From the sequence record NC_019526.1: a DNA stretch of 64,000 bases. One strand, 5' to 3'. Below the pieces are notes generated by a model. That model was not told the DNA's origin, searched no databases, and was given only the letters and a program-made list of their open reading frames with translations. This document shows positions 53,128-54,825 of this stretch, piece by piece. The position numbers and the translations under genes were made by a program. Position 1 is the stretch's first letter. Each line of letters opens with the position of its first letter.

Positions 53128-53177
53128 GGATGATTATAAATCTGAATTGACAGAAACAGCTAAAACTGTTATTATCC
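53128..53177 (+). ncRNA. 50-nt three-way-junction RNA, copy 1
   Basis: GGATGAT-TATAAA-TCTG AATTGA CAGA-AACA GCTAAAAC TGTT-ATTATCC. Confidence 0.75.
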
Positions 53178-53185
53178 TATTTTAT

Positions 53186-53370
53186 TCCACAATCAGACGT
53201 ATATGGTGTAAGTTACGTCGATGAAATCCAGAACAAGATCTCTGGTACTCTAGGAAGTGGTGAATGTTAACCTAGACGGGCTTGTTAATTGGACGATAAG
53301 CAATTAATACTTGACTAGCAGGTTTAAATTAGAGGTGACTGTCCTTCACTATACTGGAAAACCGGATGGA
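53186..53370 (+). ncRNA. Candidate structured ncRNA (~185 nt) with pseudoknot
   Basis: Four hairpins; loop TGGTGAA can pair with TTCACTA at 53345. Confidence 0.5.
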
Positions 53371-53388
53371 TTTTTAATTAAAAAAGTG

Positions 53389-53417
53389 TTGAACAAAATG
53401 TTCAATAATGATATAAT
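53389..53417 (+). promoter_or_regulatory. Promoter TTGAAC-17-TATAAT containing the inverted repeat TTGAAC-N5-GTTCAA
   Basis: Repeated at 54264, 54432 and 54639. Confidence 0.7.
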
Positions 53418-53423
53418 AATTAT

Positions 53424-53505
53424 CAATGTAAGGCGTGGAACAATGTTTACAGAAGTTACTTAGTAGCCTGTACGCCCCACGTCAAGGTAGCCGAAAGGCA
53501 AGTTT
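53424..53505 (+). ncRNA. Candidate structured ncRNA (~80 nt)
   Basis: GGCGTGG/CCACGTC, TACAG/CTGTA, GCC-GAAA-GGC; starts right after a promoter. Confidence 0.45.
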
Positions 53506-53508
53506 AAT

Positions 53509-53558
53509 GGGTGGTTATAAATCTGAATTGACAGAGACTATTAAAACAGTCACCATCC
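53509..53558 (+). ncRNA. 50-nt three-way-junction RNA, copy 2
   Basis: GGGTGGT-TATAAA-TCTG AATTGA CAGA-GACT ATTAAAAC AGTC-ACCATCC. Confidence 0.75.
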
Positions 53559-53581
53559 AAATTTTAATTTAATAGTTTAGT

Positions 53582-53725
53582 ATGAATAAAAAACAAATAC
53601 ATAAACATTATGATGAAATTGCAGTGAAGGTTTTTCGTGGTGAATTAGGTTATAAACCATCTGTTAAATCTAAATATTCAAAATCTTCTTCAATAAAGTT
53701 CAATCATAAAATAGAGTTTAAATAA
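53582..53725 (+). CDS. Possible small basic protein (47 aa)
   Basis: Open frame filling the gap; no clear RBS. Confidence 0.3.
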   Translation: MNKKQIHKHYDEIAVKVFRGELGYKPSVKSKYSKSSSIKFNHKIEFK

Positions 53726-53746
53726 TACTGGACAATAATATATAAA

Positions 53747-54196
53747 ATGAATATCACTAATGTAAAAGATTTTTTAGAATATTTTATTAAGAATACTCGT
53801 GCACGTGATGAATTAGAAAAGAATGGATTCATCCAAGGTTACGATTGCACTAATTTCTTTTATACTATTGATAAACATGAATATTATGTCGATGCAATTT
53901 TAATTGATGATGATGGGTATTGCGTTGGATTTTCATTCGAAGATATATCACAAGATGCACCAATAAACTTTTATGCATTATATTATAATAAAAAAGATAA
54001 TATTTTGAAATTAGGATTTACTCGTGAATCAGATGAAGATGTTGTATTCGATTGTAACACATGGTTGGAACATGATTCATTCTTTCAAAGTACATTAATT
54101 CATAACTTTATGACAACAGATTTAGAGTACTGGAAAAATTGCATAGAATTACTTAATGTAATTTATAATGAACAAATCAAACAAAAATGGCAATAA
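53747..54196 (+). CDS. FQxS-motif family protein (paralog of 43861..44331)
   Basis: WLEHDSFFQSTLIHNFMTTDLEYWKNCI. Confidence 0.75.
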   Translation: MNITNVKDFLEYFIKNTRARDELEKNGFIQGYDCTNFFYTIDKHEYYVDAILIDDDGYCVGFSFEDISQDAPINFYALYYNKKDNILKLGFTRESDEDVVFDCNTWLEHDSFFQSTLIHNFMTTDLEYWKNCIELLNVIYNEQIKQKWQ

Positions 54197-54263
54197 TCAC
54201 AGGACGGTTCGGTATTTGGTAGTATGTTTGGCTGAATAAAGTATAAACGTTTAAAAAAAAGTG

Positions 54264-54291
54264 TTGAACAAAAAGTTCAGTACTATATAAT
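54264..54291 (+). promoter_or_regulatory. Promoter with TTGAAC-N5-GTTCAG inverted repeat
   Basis: Directly upstream of tRNA-Arg. Confidence 0.7.
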
Positions 54292-54302
54292 TGACTTACT
54301 AC

Positions 54303-54376
54303 GTCCCCTTAGTTCAGTTGGATAGAACAACTGCCTTCTAAGCAGTAGGTCACTGGTTCGAGTCCAGTAGGGGATA
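54303..54376 (+). tRNA. trnR: tRNA-Arg(TCT)
   Basis: GTCCCCT/AGGGGAT, ACTGC-CTTCTAA-GCAGT, GGTTCGAGTCC; CCA not directly encoded. Confidence 0.93.
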
Positions 54377-54431
54377 TACCATACAATATGGGAATAGTTA
54401 GAAGATATTCCCAATTTTAATTTAAAAAGTG

Positions 54432-54460
54432 TTGAACAAAAAGTTCAATAATGATATAAT
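54432..54460 (+). promoter_or_regulatory. Promoter with TTGAAC-N5-GTTCAA inverted repeat
   Basis: TTGAAC-17-TATAAT upstream of tRNA-Ser(GCT). Confidence 0.7.
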
Positions 54461-54529
54461 GGTATTATAAAAGGTTGTAATACTTAATATTAACTTTTAA
54501 GAAGATAATTAGTTATCATACACAAATTT

Positions 54530-54616
54530 AGTGAGTTGGATGAGTGGTTGAAATCACCACCCTGCTAAGGTGGCATATGCGAAAGCGTATCGTGGGTTCG
54601 AATCCCACACTCACTG
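54530..54616 (+). tRNA. trnS: tRNA-Ser(GCT)
   Basis: AGTGAGT/ACTCACT, CCACC-CTGCTAA-GGTGG, long variable arm; no encoded CCA. Confidence 0.92.
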
Positions 54617-54638
54617 TAAAATTCAATTAAAAAAAGTG

Positions 54639-54667
54639 TTGAACAAAAAGTTCAGTACTGATATAAT
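54639..54667 (+). promoter_or_regulatory. Promoter with TTGAAC-N5-GTTCAG inverted repeat
   Basis: TTGAAC-17-TATAAT upstream of tRNA-Ser(TGA). Confidence 0.7.
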
Positions 54668-54679
54668 AAAAGAATAAAC

Positions 54680-54767
54680 GGAAGGATGGCCGAGTGGTTT
54701 AAGGCACTGGTCTTGAAAACCAGCAATCCGAAAGGGTTCTAGAGTTCAAATCTCTATCCTTCCACCA
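54680..54767 (+). tRNA. trnS: tRNA-Ser(TGA)
   Basis: GGAAGGA/TCCTTCC, CTGGT-CTTGAAA-ACCAG, long variable arm, CCA. Confidence 0.93.
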
Positions 54768-54775
54768 GATTTTAT

Positions 54776-54825
54776 GGATAGTTATAAAGTTGAATTAACA
54801 GCGACACTTAAAATTGTCACTATCC
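54776..54825 (+). ncRNA. 50-nt three-way-junction RNA, copy 3
   Basis: GGATAGT-TATAAA-GTTG AATTAA CAGC-GACA CTTAAAAT TGTC-ACTATCC. Confidence 0.75.

Follow-up and report, generated by a model that had tools for sequence, protein, structure and literature searches.

A 50-nt three-way-junction element in the tRNA-gene region of Klebsiella phage RaK2 and its homologues: a possible terminator/attenuator-plus-promoter cassette

The DNA analysed is a 64,000-nt stretch (hereafter the window) of NC_019526.1, the Klebsiella jumbo phage vB_KleM_RaK2. The tRNA-gene region of this phage contains three copies of a 50-nt element, all on the + strand, which were characterized by sequence, fold and homologue alignment:

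53128..53177, + strand: copy 1 (c1) of the 50-nt three-way-junction element
53509..53558, + strand: copy 2 (c2) of the element
54776..54825, + strand: copy 3 (c3) of the element

The sequence of c1 is GGATGAT-TATAAA-TCTG-AATTGA-CAGA-AACA-GCTAAAAC-TGTT-ATTATCC, and the P1 strands are GGGTGGT...ACCATCC in c2 and GGATAGT...ACTATCC in c3. The element comprises P1 (positions 1-7/44-50), the junction strand J1/2 (8-13, UAUAAA), P2 (14-17/24-27) and P3 (28-31/40-43), with J2/3 and J3/1 being 0 nt long; a fifth P3 pair, 32:39, is often present according to RNAalifold and gives an L3 loop of 6 nt. This three-way junction is the minimum-free-energy RNA fold of the + strand in each copy (c1 -9.7, c2 -12.9 and c3 -11.1 kcal/mol; z-scores -3.1, -2.4 and -3.4, respectively), and folding of the - strands of all three recovered no common fold. 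A scan of the whole window with the core pattern returned three exact matches, the runner-up sites carrying 3 mismatches. Thus, the sequence-only reading, which had described three copies of exactly 50 nt at these positions, each folding as a three-way junction just 3' of another RNA, proved accurate in all these respects. The neighboring RNAs and associated signals are the following:

53017..53119, + strand: RNA-A, unannotated, between tRNA-Gly and c1, with the closing stem CAACAGGT/ACCTGTT
53178..53186, + strand: U-rich tail after c1 (TATTTTATT), Carafa tail score 2.93 (among the highest 2% of positions in the window)
53184..53380, + strand: RNA-X, unannotated, beginning 7 nt past c1
53389..53417, + strand: repeat promoter TTGAAC-17-TATAAT, the predicted driver of RNA-B and c2
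53424..53505, + strand: RNA-B, unannotated, with a 7-bp closing stem GGCGTGG/CCACGTC, an inner hairpin and a GCC-GAAA-GGC hairpin
53559..53572, + strand: tail AAATTTTAATTTAA after c2, with a Carafa tail score of 0.8
54639..54667, + strand: repeat promoter, the predicted driver of tRNA-Ser(tga) and c3
54680..54767, + strand: tRNA-Ser(tga), ending 8 nt before c3
54826..54839, + strand: tail AAATTTTAATTTAA after c3, followed by a degenerate local repeat promoter (TTGACA 54847-54852) and tRNA-Met

The RNAs upstream of c1 and c2 are conserved: homologues of RNA-A lie inside tRNA clusters of unrelated phages, and RNA-B precedes both c2 and the Asteriusvirus copy. In phage 121Q the homologue of RNA-X begins right after an ordinary promoter. 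The neighboring tRNA-Arg unit ends in a plain hairpin followed by this tail as well, AAATTTTAATTTAA, which is also found 3' of other RNA units.

Searches with Rfam 15 yielded no match overlapping any copy at gathering thresholds, only tRNAs and noise away from the copies in 52300-58300 at E<=10, and none over the element in the podophage loci (see below) at E<=1, in agreement with the earlier reading, which had recognised in it no known ribozyme or riboswitch. ARAGORN and RF00005 detected the 8 true tRNAs and not the elements, in which neither a UUCRANY loop nor a cloverleaf with an anticodon arm or T-loop/D-loop was found; the only likeness is to the top half of a tRNA, in the form of the 7-bp closing stem and an 11-12-bp stack. 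The literature, setting aside the 10,006 uncurated candidates of PMC10690425, yielded no description of this motif or of RaK2 promoters and terminators. Several specific identities were considered and rejected. A hammerhead core, whose conserved nucleotides lie in the junction strands, is impossible because J1/2 is the sole junction strand, and a nested HDV-like fold needs conserved sequence 3' of P1, which is where the module ends. An AlaRS-like G3·U70 identity was dropped, this pair being A-U in 7/17 variants, as were two pseudoknots proposed by eye (L3 with the U-rich tail, and the linker with J1/2), because both are absent from the Citrovirus copies. The J1/2 strands of c1 and c2 show no more than a partial match to a T4-type late promoter (TATAAATA).

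Homologues of the element were collected into a set of 17 distinct variants, every one exactly 50 nt long. Standard pairs occupy 97.6% of the pair cells, whereas shuffles give 88.5% and slid controls 30-65%, and compensatory changes on both sides affect 5 pairs (6 counting the additional 32:39 pair), with covariation in all three nested helices; the observed covariation score was reached by 0/500 shuffles. Hence, the compensatory changes seen among the three RaK2 copies are real and recur among homologues in other phages. The phylogeny is shallow, as the variants fall into three phage groups for which horizontal transfer is the probable link, and the number of independent compensatory events is therefore small. 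G·U pairs at 3:48, 5:46 and 29:42 occur on one strand only; as they would be A·C on the opposite strand, they identify the + strand as the RNA. Alongside the covarying stems, 26 positions are invariant: L3 contains UAA in every variant, within a near-invariant UAAA(A). There is also possible covariation between the loops at 22:33 (A-U in 7 variants, G-C in 5, G·U in 5 and none unpaired).

The element is present in three copies per genome in Alcyoneusvirus, in one copy in Asteriusvirus, and in some Citrovirus-like Klebsiella podophages. Pattern scans of public contigs separated true copies (14-15/15 pairs) from chance matches (<=12) by a clear gap among the matches listed. With the exact core, the real matches in IMG/VR were RaK2, 121Q and one podophage contig only, and two looser patterns recovered no further copies there. 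Metagenome contigs contributed at least 3 real copies among the matches listed (L245, L271 and L279), and bacterial genome contigs none among the matches listed (at least 120 loci). By blastn, c1 had no match among 5,426 E. coli genomes, and its matches in PLSDB plasmids were all of chance quality. Covariance-model searches with filters off detected no copy in Pecta and CVT22, which are Citrovirus phages of greater distance, and none beside the RNA-A, RNA-X or RNA-B homologues of KP2025, vB_Mm5, XT32 and Proteus phage 2; an IMG/VR search via the podophage protein encoded downstream of the element recovered close relatives only. RaK2 and the Citrovirus-like podophages are homologous over exactly 51 nt and no further, and close relatives of the latter share a promoter and a first early gene but differ in whether the element lies between them. 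Its neighbors are rearranged in L279, EJP2 and UE-S1, and decayed copies are found in UE-S1 (truncated) and in fEgEco12, TH47 and EJP2 (broken pairs).

Comparison of the variants revealed that the invariant segments left single-stranded by the fold coincide with the parts of a sigma-70 promoter: an AT-rich TTATAAA at -48..-42 (invariant in 17/17 variants), a -35 of TTGACA or TTAACA (element positions 20-25), a 17-bp spacer that wholly encloses P3, and a -10 of the form nAnnAT (43-48) that is the 3' strand of P1. In RaK2 the corresponding sites are:

53147..53175, + strand: predicted sigma-70-like promoter in c1 (TTGACA 53147-53152, 17-bp spacer, TGT-TATTAT, -10 at 53170-53175)
53528..53556, + strand: promoter-like hexamers in c2 (TTGACA 53528-53533, 17 bp, CACCAT 53551-53556)
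54795..54823, + strand: promoter-like hexamers in c3 (TTAACA, 17 bp, TGT-CACTAT), the weakest of the three

The arrangement TTGACA-17-TATTAT, with 11/12 matches, is shared by c1, Klyazma and L015. The c1 site is the top-scoring promoter-like site in 52300-55300, and the c1 and Klyazma copies, both with TGn, rank first or joint first among those of their regions. The -10 reads TATCAT in Asterion, TACTAT in EJP2, and CACCAT or CACTAT, with a C at -12, in c2, c3 and most Asteriusvirus copies; -11A, -8A and -7T are nevertheless invariant (c2 included), and -11A and -7T are the two most critical -10 bases. With a rough position-weight matrix of approximate base frequencies, whose AT-rich background under-penalises C mismatches, all variants fall within the top 0.005-0.9% of window positions, and c1, c2, EJP2 and the Citrovirus copies score 10.7-13.2 versus 9.9-10.9 for five obvious local promoters. 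In the CACCAT/CACTAT copies P1 pairing is kept at the expense of the -10 match, and hence the RNA constraint there is at least as strong as that of the promoter. The UAAA(A) of L3 (spacer positions -21..-18), the full invariance of TTATAAA and the possible 22:33 covariation are features that a canonical promoter leaves unexplained.

The genomic contexts are consistent with such a promoter. In 8/9 contexts a gene or RNA starts 7-28 nt downstream of the element: an ATG lies 19-28 nt past c2, the 121Q copy, L271, L279_c3 and the Citrovirus copies, and a tRNA-Arg 23 nt past the EJP2 copy. No other promoter was found in the stretch between the element and these starts. The exception is c3, which has the weakest hexamers and is the sole copy followed by a separate promoter-like repeat. 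The sequence-only reading had interpreted the invariant loops as functional RNA loops, and it is on this point that it has to be revised: given that the invariant segments match promoter parts and that the downstream starts fit, much of the loop conservation may reflect a constraint at the DNA level.

The tails suggest a possible role in transcription termination for a subset of the copies. In c1 and all the Asteriusvirus copies, where the tail is ATTTTTTT(TT), a U-tract directly follows the element, with Carafa tail scores of 2.9-3.5 in the top 1-2% of window positions. The score of 0.8 in c2 and c3 (tails AAATTTT...) and in L271 equals the window median; in c2 it is the AAA at the front of the tail that keeps it this low. 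A U-tract is missing from the Citrovirus copies and EJP2, which score 0.3-0.6. Thus, termination cannot be a universal RNA-level function of the element. A consensus terminator scan called no copy, because its loop limit excludes branched stems. The GC-closed P1 with an immediate U-tract in c1 and the Asteriusvirus copies, and the placement of the element at the end of very short transcription units, are reminiscent of intrinsic terminators; it differs from them in that its "hairpin" is branched with invariant loops, in the AAA preceding the U-run in c2 and c3, and in the lack of a U-run in the Citrovirus and EJP2 copies.

Taken together, these observations are tentatively best accounted for, at slightly less than an even chance, by a composite terminator/attenuator-plus-promoter cassette, a three-way-junction variant of the PeSL (promoter-early stem-loop) cassettes of T4-like phages, in which promoter and terminator activity have been demonstrated experimentally (Arbiol et al. 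2010, PMC2839356; Comeau et al. 2014, PMC4122927). Starting from the observed fold, covariation, promoter match, genomic contexts and modular distribution, we infer termination, initiation and the copies likely to perform each. Polymerase would enter from a small upstream unit (promoter, tRNA or small RNA, element), and the + strand transcript would fold into the three-way junction and so close that unit. In c1 and the Asteriusvirus copies the junction would be the structured part of an intrinsic terminator, and in the other copies an attenuator or a stable end structure. As DNA, the same 50 bp would act as a sigma-70 promoter, restarting transcription ~5 nt past the element to serve the gene or RNA located 7-28 nt downstream. 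The stems would have been built around fixed promoter bases, with P2 pairing the CA of the -35, P3 placed in the spacer and P1 pairing the 5' end of the element with the -10, and this could be why the stems covary around unchanging loops. The cassette probably moves among phages as a discrete module, as do PeSLs.

The resemblance to PeSLs extends to several features: both are small intergenic cassettes that combine a sigma-70 promoter (near-consensus in PeSLs and, as a predicted promoter, in c1, Klyazma, L015, Asterion and EJP2) with AT-rich sequence 5' of the -35, a stem-loop that falls in the spacer or overlaps the -10, and the SD and ATG of the next gene just 3'. Both appear to reside in plastic regions rich in small genes and to behave as movable modules that are present or absent between close relatives, and both are hosted by phages within the wider T4-like group. 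However, a PeSL is a simple G-run/C-run hairpin, whereas the element has three helices in a fixed 50-nt junction. PeSLs occur by the dozen per genome beside ORFans in hyperplastic regions, whereas the element has 1-3 copies per genome, mostly beside tRNA or small-RNA genes; there are just three in RaK2 and one in Asteriusvirus, all in the tRNA region, which is a counterpoint to the PeSL comparison. Moreover, several copies have a poor -10, the loop conservation goes partly beyond promoter needs, and the activities established by experiment for PeSLs are here predicted from sequence.

As part of the loop conservation is unexplained by the promoter, the element may have a dedicated RNA role (as a mimic of the tRNA top half or processing signal, a decoy or a ribozyme). 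It is possible, if unlikely, that the junction represents a new class of tRNA-array RNA, an autonomous 50-nt module, either tRNA-top-half mimic or new ribozyme, that directs 3' maturation of the upstream tRNAs and small RNAs or is released to bind a host factor; it would then spread horizontally between unrelated virulent enterobacterial phages, the promoter-like hexamers being secondary. In its processing form, likewise a minority option, the element would be a small RNA or cis-acting signal of the tRNA array that mimics a tRNA top half and is cut by RNase P at G1. The matching layout is also one we would not expect but take seriously: an acceptor-like P1 stacked on P3 (4-5 bp) as an 11-12-bp minihelix, with P2 resembling a D-arm. 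The cut itself, about as doubtful, would release the upstream tRNA or small RNA, which would keep a short 3' trailer, and would remove the terminator. Consistent with such mimicry, P1 is always exactly 7 bp, G1 is present in 16/17 variants and the base at -1 is always a pyrimidine; P3 abuts the 3' strand of P1 without a spacer in the fashion of a T-arm (7+5 = 12 bp once 32:39 forms); and 50 nt is approximately the length of a tRNA minus its anticodon arm and variable loop. The copies lie 8-17 nt past tRNAs or structured RNAs, a spacing as in a tRNA array, the EJP2 copy sits between tRNA-Ser and tRNA-Arg without a U-tract, RNA-A and RNA-X are array-embedded in other phages, and the loop conservation and 22:33 covariation would find a place here. 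RaK2 also has genes for a CCA-adding enzyme and for enzymes of RNA repair (PMC3622015). A comparable arrangement is that of mascRNA, a tRNA-like RNA downstream of MALAT1 that makes the MALAT1 3' end. Removal of terminators by RNase P is reported for some E. coli tRNA transcripts (leuX, secG-leuU and metT; PMC2811032, PMC2241853). As in these cases, an acceptor-stem-like structure, with its 7-bp closing stem and coaxial stack, lies a few nt past the mature 3' end of another RNA; unlike them, the element lacks a T-loop, D-loop, conserved discriminator and CCA, and both ARAGORN and the Rfam tRNA model remain blank at it even at E<=10. Furthermore, in the 5' leader of Citrovirus-like phages a cut at G1 has no obvious use, and the strong promoter match and downstream gene starts would be left as coincidences. 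Very unlikely, in turn, is a trans-acting decoy or sponge, in which the 50-nt RNA, once released, would capture a protein of the host or the phage such as a tRNA-directed nuclease or, with as little likelihood, another defence factor. In its favor, the module recurs in virulent Klebsiella, E. coli and Salmonella phages that are unrelated to one another, is absent from the E. coli genomes and plasmids searched, and has conserved loops. The earlier idea of an anticodon-loop mimic, subsumed here, fits c3, whose L3 contains the CUUAAAA that forms the anticodon loop in the tRNA-Leu(UAA) encoded by RaK2 itself, but not the other copies: CUUAAAA is confined to c3-type copies, position 33 is C in five variants, and L3 has 6 or 8 nt, never 7. 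Against a decoy, decayed copies exist, and no co-occurring partner protein was found in the regions examined. A new class of small self-cleaving ribozyme trimming the 3' trailers of upstream RNAs appears highly improbable. The placement directly 3' of tRNAs and small RNAs and the compact junction with invariant unpaired nucleotides recall the HDV-like theta ribozymes, which adjoin phage tRNAs and have been proposed to process 3' trailers (PMC10879173). However, the element shares neither sequence nor topology with these, the host phage groups differ, and its self-cleavage is hypothetical; no Rfam 15 ribozyme family is matched even at E<=10, the hammerhead and nested HDV folds are incompatible with its geometry, and even after cleavage at its 5' end a trailer of 8-17 nt would remain.

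Two further alternatives retain only one of the two levels of constraint. According to one, which we consider quite unlikely, the element is a generic RNA end structure, serving as a terminator or 3' exonuclease block in jumbo phages and as a 5'-terminal stabiliser in podophages; that the promoter resemblance is incidental or merely ancestral is equally hard to favor. The occurrence of simple hairpins fits this proposal, as in the RaK2 tRNA-Arg unit and in the Citrovirus-like allele without the element, which has a GC hairpin (GCCGC...GCGGC) at the same spot. So do the terminator-grade tails of c1 and the Asteriusvirus copies. In Citrovirus-like phages the element lies in the 5' leader, directly downstream of the early promoter and before the first early gene, 0-2 nt from the predicted start of the upstream extended -10 promoter TGcTATCAT. 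This is the geometry in which 5'-terminal stem-loops protect E. coli mRNAs. Nevertheless, a generic hairpin does not explain the 26 invariant positions, the fixed length or the fact that the module is transferred horizontally with such precision. Promoter matches of this strength should turn up at about 1 in 10^3-10^4 positions, and the genes directly past a terminator would be left without a promoter. The opposite extreme, a promoter acting as DNA alone, with stems arising by chance or as palindromes of protein sites, accounts for the promoter match but is scarcely credible: it is disfavoured by the covariation of three nested helices, with paired cells well above both kinds of control, and by the confinement of G·U pairs to one strand.

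The podophage context also recalls the put RNAs of phage HK022, cis-acting antitermination RNAs of two stem-loops (~70 nt) just past early promoters, in that the element directly follows an early promoter ahead of the first early gene. However, U-tracts come after it in jumbo phages, which runs counter to the requirements of antitermination, and we know of no sequence similarity between the two.

If the composite terminator/attenuator-plus-promoter interpretation is correct, the element is a very compact example of a single 50-bp sequence under simultaneous selection for two codes, a DNA promoter and an RNA three-way junction. Conserved loops with covarying stems would then by themselves be an unsafe signature of a functional RNA loop, a caution that bears on every covariation-based screen for RNA motifs in phage genomes. 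It would also extend PeSL-type mobile cassettes to jumbo phages, podophages and tRNA/small-RNA units, and could yield a small portable terminator-promoter insulator part. Should an RNA role alone be true, phage tRNA arrays would have in this element a new RNA for processing or for use as a decoy. Under either interpretation, the tRNA region of these phages is packed with unannotated, horizontally shared and uncharacterised structured RNAs; RNA-X has homologues with 82-94% identity in phages of Proteus, Morganella and Shigella that are T4-like or T5-like.

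The window corresponds to bases 124001-188000 of the Klebsiella jumbo phage vB_KleM_RaK2 (NC_019526), at 100% identity. The three 50-nt copies of the element in it have the positions and sequences reported in the sequence-only reading (53128-53177, 53509-53558 and 54776-54825, all on the + strand; hereafter c1, c2 and c3), and the three-way junction it described, with stems P1, P2 and P3, is the minimum-free-energy fold of each + strand copy (-9.7, -12.9 and -11.1 kcal/mol for c1, c2 and c3, respectively; z-scores of -2.4 to -3.4 versus shuffled sequences). No common fold was found for the reverse strands of the three copies. 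A pattern scan of the window recovered three mismatch-free occurrences of the core pattern in 64 kb. Only tiny, non-ATG ORFs extend over the copies, and the published RaK2 annotation has no feature at them. A search against Rfam 15, at gathering thresholds and at E<=10, found only eight tRNAs and no match to the element; the motif has no precedent in Rfam nor, so far as could be found, in the literature. The position of the copies 3' of other RNAs was likewise borne out, with each ending a very short unit that in two cases includes one of the unannotated RNAs of this region, RNA-A or RNA-B:

Units ending in a copy of the element
+ strand, unit of c1: tRNA-Gly, then RNA-A, then c1
+ strand, unit of c2: repeat promoter (53389-53417), then RNA-B, then c2
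+ strand, unit of c3: repeat promoter (54639-54667), then tRNA-Ser, then c3

A covariance-model search of phages, as had been proposed, combined with pattern scans and blastn, recovered homologues in several phage groups, all of exactly 50 nt and distributed over four settings: every RaK2-like phage of Alcyoneusvirus (three copies), Asteriusvirus (the 121Q/PBECO4 group of about 30 genomes, one copy each), some of the Citrovirus-like Klebsiella podophages (one copy in Klyazma, Asterion and one IMG/VR contig), and at least three metagenome contigs. Among the matches listed, real copies keep 14-15 of the 15 pairs and chance matches at most 12. In an alignment of 17 distinct variants standard pairs make up 97.6% of the pair cells, and the compensatory changes seen earlier in RaK2 are upheld by five pairs altered on both sides (5:46, 6:45, 14:27, 28:43 and 31:40). 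The observed covariation score was reached by none of 500 shuffles, pairing falls to 30-65% in slid registers used as a control, and RNAalifold independently recovered the same junction along with a fifth P3 pair. Thus, the RNA structure of the element is real, albeit with the caveat of a shallow phylogeny, and the folded strand is the + strand, as shown by G·U pairs at 3:48, 5:46 and 29:42. Position 22 of loop L2 (G or A) and position 33 of loop L3 (C or U) are always pairable in this alignment (A-U in 7 variants, G-C in 5, G·U in 5 and A·C in none), which hints, weakly given the phylogeny, at a loop-loop tertiary contact.

A promoter scan also picked out the element itself. In c1 and the Klyazma copy TTGACA, a 17-bp spacer and TATTAT give an 11/12 match, with a TGn extension present in c1. 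Projected on the fold, J1/2, the strand joining P1 and P2 (TTATAAA), forms an AT-rich block from -48 to -42, the -35 hexamer covers L2 and the 3' strand of P2, the spacer is filled by P3 and L3, and the final base of P3 together with the 3' strand of P1 makes up the -10 hexamer. Of the -10 positions, -11A, -8A and -7T are invariant across the 17 variants, while -12, -10 and -9 vary as pyrimidines. With a rough position-weight matrix built on literature consensus frequencies, the ranking by which is approximate, every variant falls in the top 0.005-0.9% of window positions; c1, c2, the EJP2 copy and the podophage copies score 10.7-13.2, versus 9.9-10.9 for the region's five obvious repeat promoters. 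Hence, of the earlier proposal that the invariant loops are functional loops of a selected RNA, the selected fold stands, but the loops coincide with parts of a sigma-70 promoter. J1/2 of c1 and c2 (53135-53142 and 53516-53523) also reads TATAAATC, a 7/8 match to the T4-type late promoter TATAAATA, and a related late motif, ATAAATA, has been reported in the RaK2-like phages CBB and GAP32 (PMC5259590); the match is probably coincidental, as c3 and other variants match less well.

The downstream context, as read from gene positions, supports a promoter role. RNA-X, a further unannotated RNA, starts 7 nt past c1, and its homologue in 121Q starts directly past an ordinary promoter. Start codons lie 19-28 nt past c2, the Asteriusvirus copy, the podophage copies and those of the metagenome contigs L271 and L279 (its third copy), and in EJP2 a tRNA-Arg lies 23 nt downstream. 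The copy with the weakest hexamers, c3, is the sole one then trailed by a separate promoter-like repeat.

At the upstream end of the question, termination has to be graded copy by copy, as the tails differ. The c1 tail TATTTTATT and the Asteriusvirus tails (A then U7-U9) are terminator-grade, in the top 1-2% of window positions by the d'Aubenton-Carafa score; those of c2 and c3, which open with AAA, have median scores, and tail scoring found no U-tract after the podophage and EJP2 copies. By their tails, then, some copies are probable terminators and others doubtful ones, and for a few termination is excluded. The adjoining tRNA-Arg unit ends in an ordinary hairpin with a AATTTTAATTT tail, also seen at the units with the junction. 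Several RNA units have the motif (A)ATTTTAATTTAA(A) at their 3' ends (53560-53570, 54413-54423, 54827-54837, 52188-52198 and 52466-52476), after the junction, after a plain hairpin or after neither; it could serve as a weak U-tract, as an RNase E site or as an UP element of the next promoter.

These features recall the promoter-early stem-loop cassettes (PeSLs) of T4-like phages, which combine a strong sigma-70 promoter and an AT-rich block upstream of the -35 with a stem-loop, placed between -35 and -10 or over the -10, that terminates upstream transcription; their 3' edge bears an SD and ATG, and they are mobile and give indels (PMC2839356, PMC4122927). The element matches this description in its AT-rich block, in paired structure between -35 and -10 and over the -10, and, except at c3, in the downstream start; near-consensus hexamers occur in some copies, such as those of c1 and Klyazma, and presence or absence in close relatives may reflect mobility. 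It differs in having a three-way junction in place of the stem-loop, and is read as a PeSL-like composite cassette. A terminator or attenuator joined to a promoter is accordingly the function we favor, though with less than even confidence, and such a composite most likely fits better than a new ribozyme or riboswitch. The stem-loop would have given way to a junction built around fixed promoter bases, which would account for invariant loops beside covarying stems; the 17-bp spacer would account for the fixed 50-nt length, and a cassette of this kind for the genomic positions and modular spread.

Several features left unexplained by the cassette keep a dedicated RNA function alive, although an autonomous processing or decoy RNA appears unlikely. 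In c2, c3 and most Asteriusvirus copies P1 pairing is perfect despite a poor -10 (CACCAT or CACTAT); the UAAA core of L3 sits in a spacer stretch unconstrained by promoters; the invariance of TTATAAA exceeds that of usual UP-like elements; positions 22 and 33 are never unpaired; and the 1-3 copies per genome all lie among tRNA and small-RNA genes. In its most concrete version the element would mimic the top half of a tRNA and place an RNase P site shortly past the 3' end of the upstream RNA, as might be suggested by the acceptor-like 7-bp P1 with G as its first base, the pyrimidine at -1, the 7+5 bp stack and the EJP2 element, which lies between two tRNAs like a further array member; however, tRNA models do not detect it, and the T-loop and CCA are missing. 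For a new self-cleaving ribozyme, the theta ribozymes that adjoin phage tRNAs (PMC10879173) might offer a precedent, but in position only, and hammerhead and HDV-like topologies both fail to fit. The anticodon-loop mimic suggested from the sequence fits c3, but no other copy.

The element also appears to move as a unit. In the podophages it follows an extended -10 promoter (TGcTATCAT) and precedes the first early gene; in the close relatives VR7901 and two IMG/VR contigs this promoter and gene are present, but a GC hairpin stands where the element would be. Homology between RaK2 and the podophages is limited to exactly 51 nt, the covariance model did not find the element in the more distant Citrovirus phages Pecta and CVT22, and blastn of c1 did not find it in 5,426 E. 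coli genomes or PLSDB plasmids. Its presence or absence in close relatives, the 51-nt homology and its absence from E. coli and plasmids suggest a self-contained module that virulent enterobacterial phages pass among themselves. The EJP2 copy (L422 401-450), between tRNA-Ser and tRNA-Arg and without a U-tract, has only the terminal GCC-GAAA-GGC hairpin of RNA-B ahead of it, and the UE-S1 copy (L425 401-445) is cut at position 45 by different downstream sequence; the two amount to naturally occurring rearrangement and knockout variants. A conserved non-coding stretch of about 200 nt, between the terminal repeat and the first early gene, is common to the Citrovirus-like Klebsiella podophages (L068, Klyazma, 870-1060; also L067 and L417), and no Rfam match was found for it. 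In Asterion a sequence resembling the 3' half of a tRNA (CAGGTTCGATTCCTG...) closely precedes the element, and in Klyazma a frameshift splits the first early gene (L068 1255-1814), which Asterion and VR7901 have as an intact 186-aa gene.

RNA-A (53017-53119), RNA-X (53184-53380) and RNA-B (53424-53505) are conserved and widespread in unrelated phages, mostly within tRNA clusters, and no Rfam match was found for them. Homologues of RNA-A reach as far as Cellulophaga phages, with 76-86% identity there and in Klebsiella KP2025, Erwinia 147-kb phages and Proteus T5-like phages. RNA-X is 82-94% identical in T5-like phages of Proteus and T4-like phages of Morganella, Proteus and Shigella, and RNA-B about 85% in E. 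coli Kuravirus podophages; RNA-B shows compensatory changes in L271 (GGCG/CGCC to GGTG/CACC). Upstream of tRNA-Leu, 51690-51870, 52112-52200 and 52338-52480 are further non-coding, structured-looking stretches that may be additional unannotated small RNAs; the latter two end in a NTTTTAATTTAAA tail, as do the junction units. Of the tRNAs in the region, the RaK2 RefSeq record has no more than Arg, Ser, Ser, Asn and Thr; ARAGORN and Rfam add three:

tRNAs not in the RefSeq record
52487-52574, tRNA-Leu(taa)
52941-53016, tRNA-Gly(tcc)
54885-54962, tRNA-Met(cat)

Each tiny tRNA or small-RNA unit is headed by a repeat promoter, AAAAAGTGTTGAACAAAAAGTTCA(G/A)TA(C/A)TGATATAAT, with an inverted repeat (TGAAC...GTTCA) between -35 and -10; the palindrome TCAGTACTGA is present in two copies (54639 and 54847). 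It looks PeSL-like, or a phage factor might bind to it.

Copies of the repeat promoter
52303-52332
53389-53417
54264-54291
54432-54460
54639-54667
54847-54875

A free-standing HNH endonuclease gene (ORF219, 54982-55689) lies within the tRNA cluster, and in L279 different HNH-type genes flank RNA-A and the third copy of the element, consistent with shuffling of the tRNA region driven by homing endonucleases.
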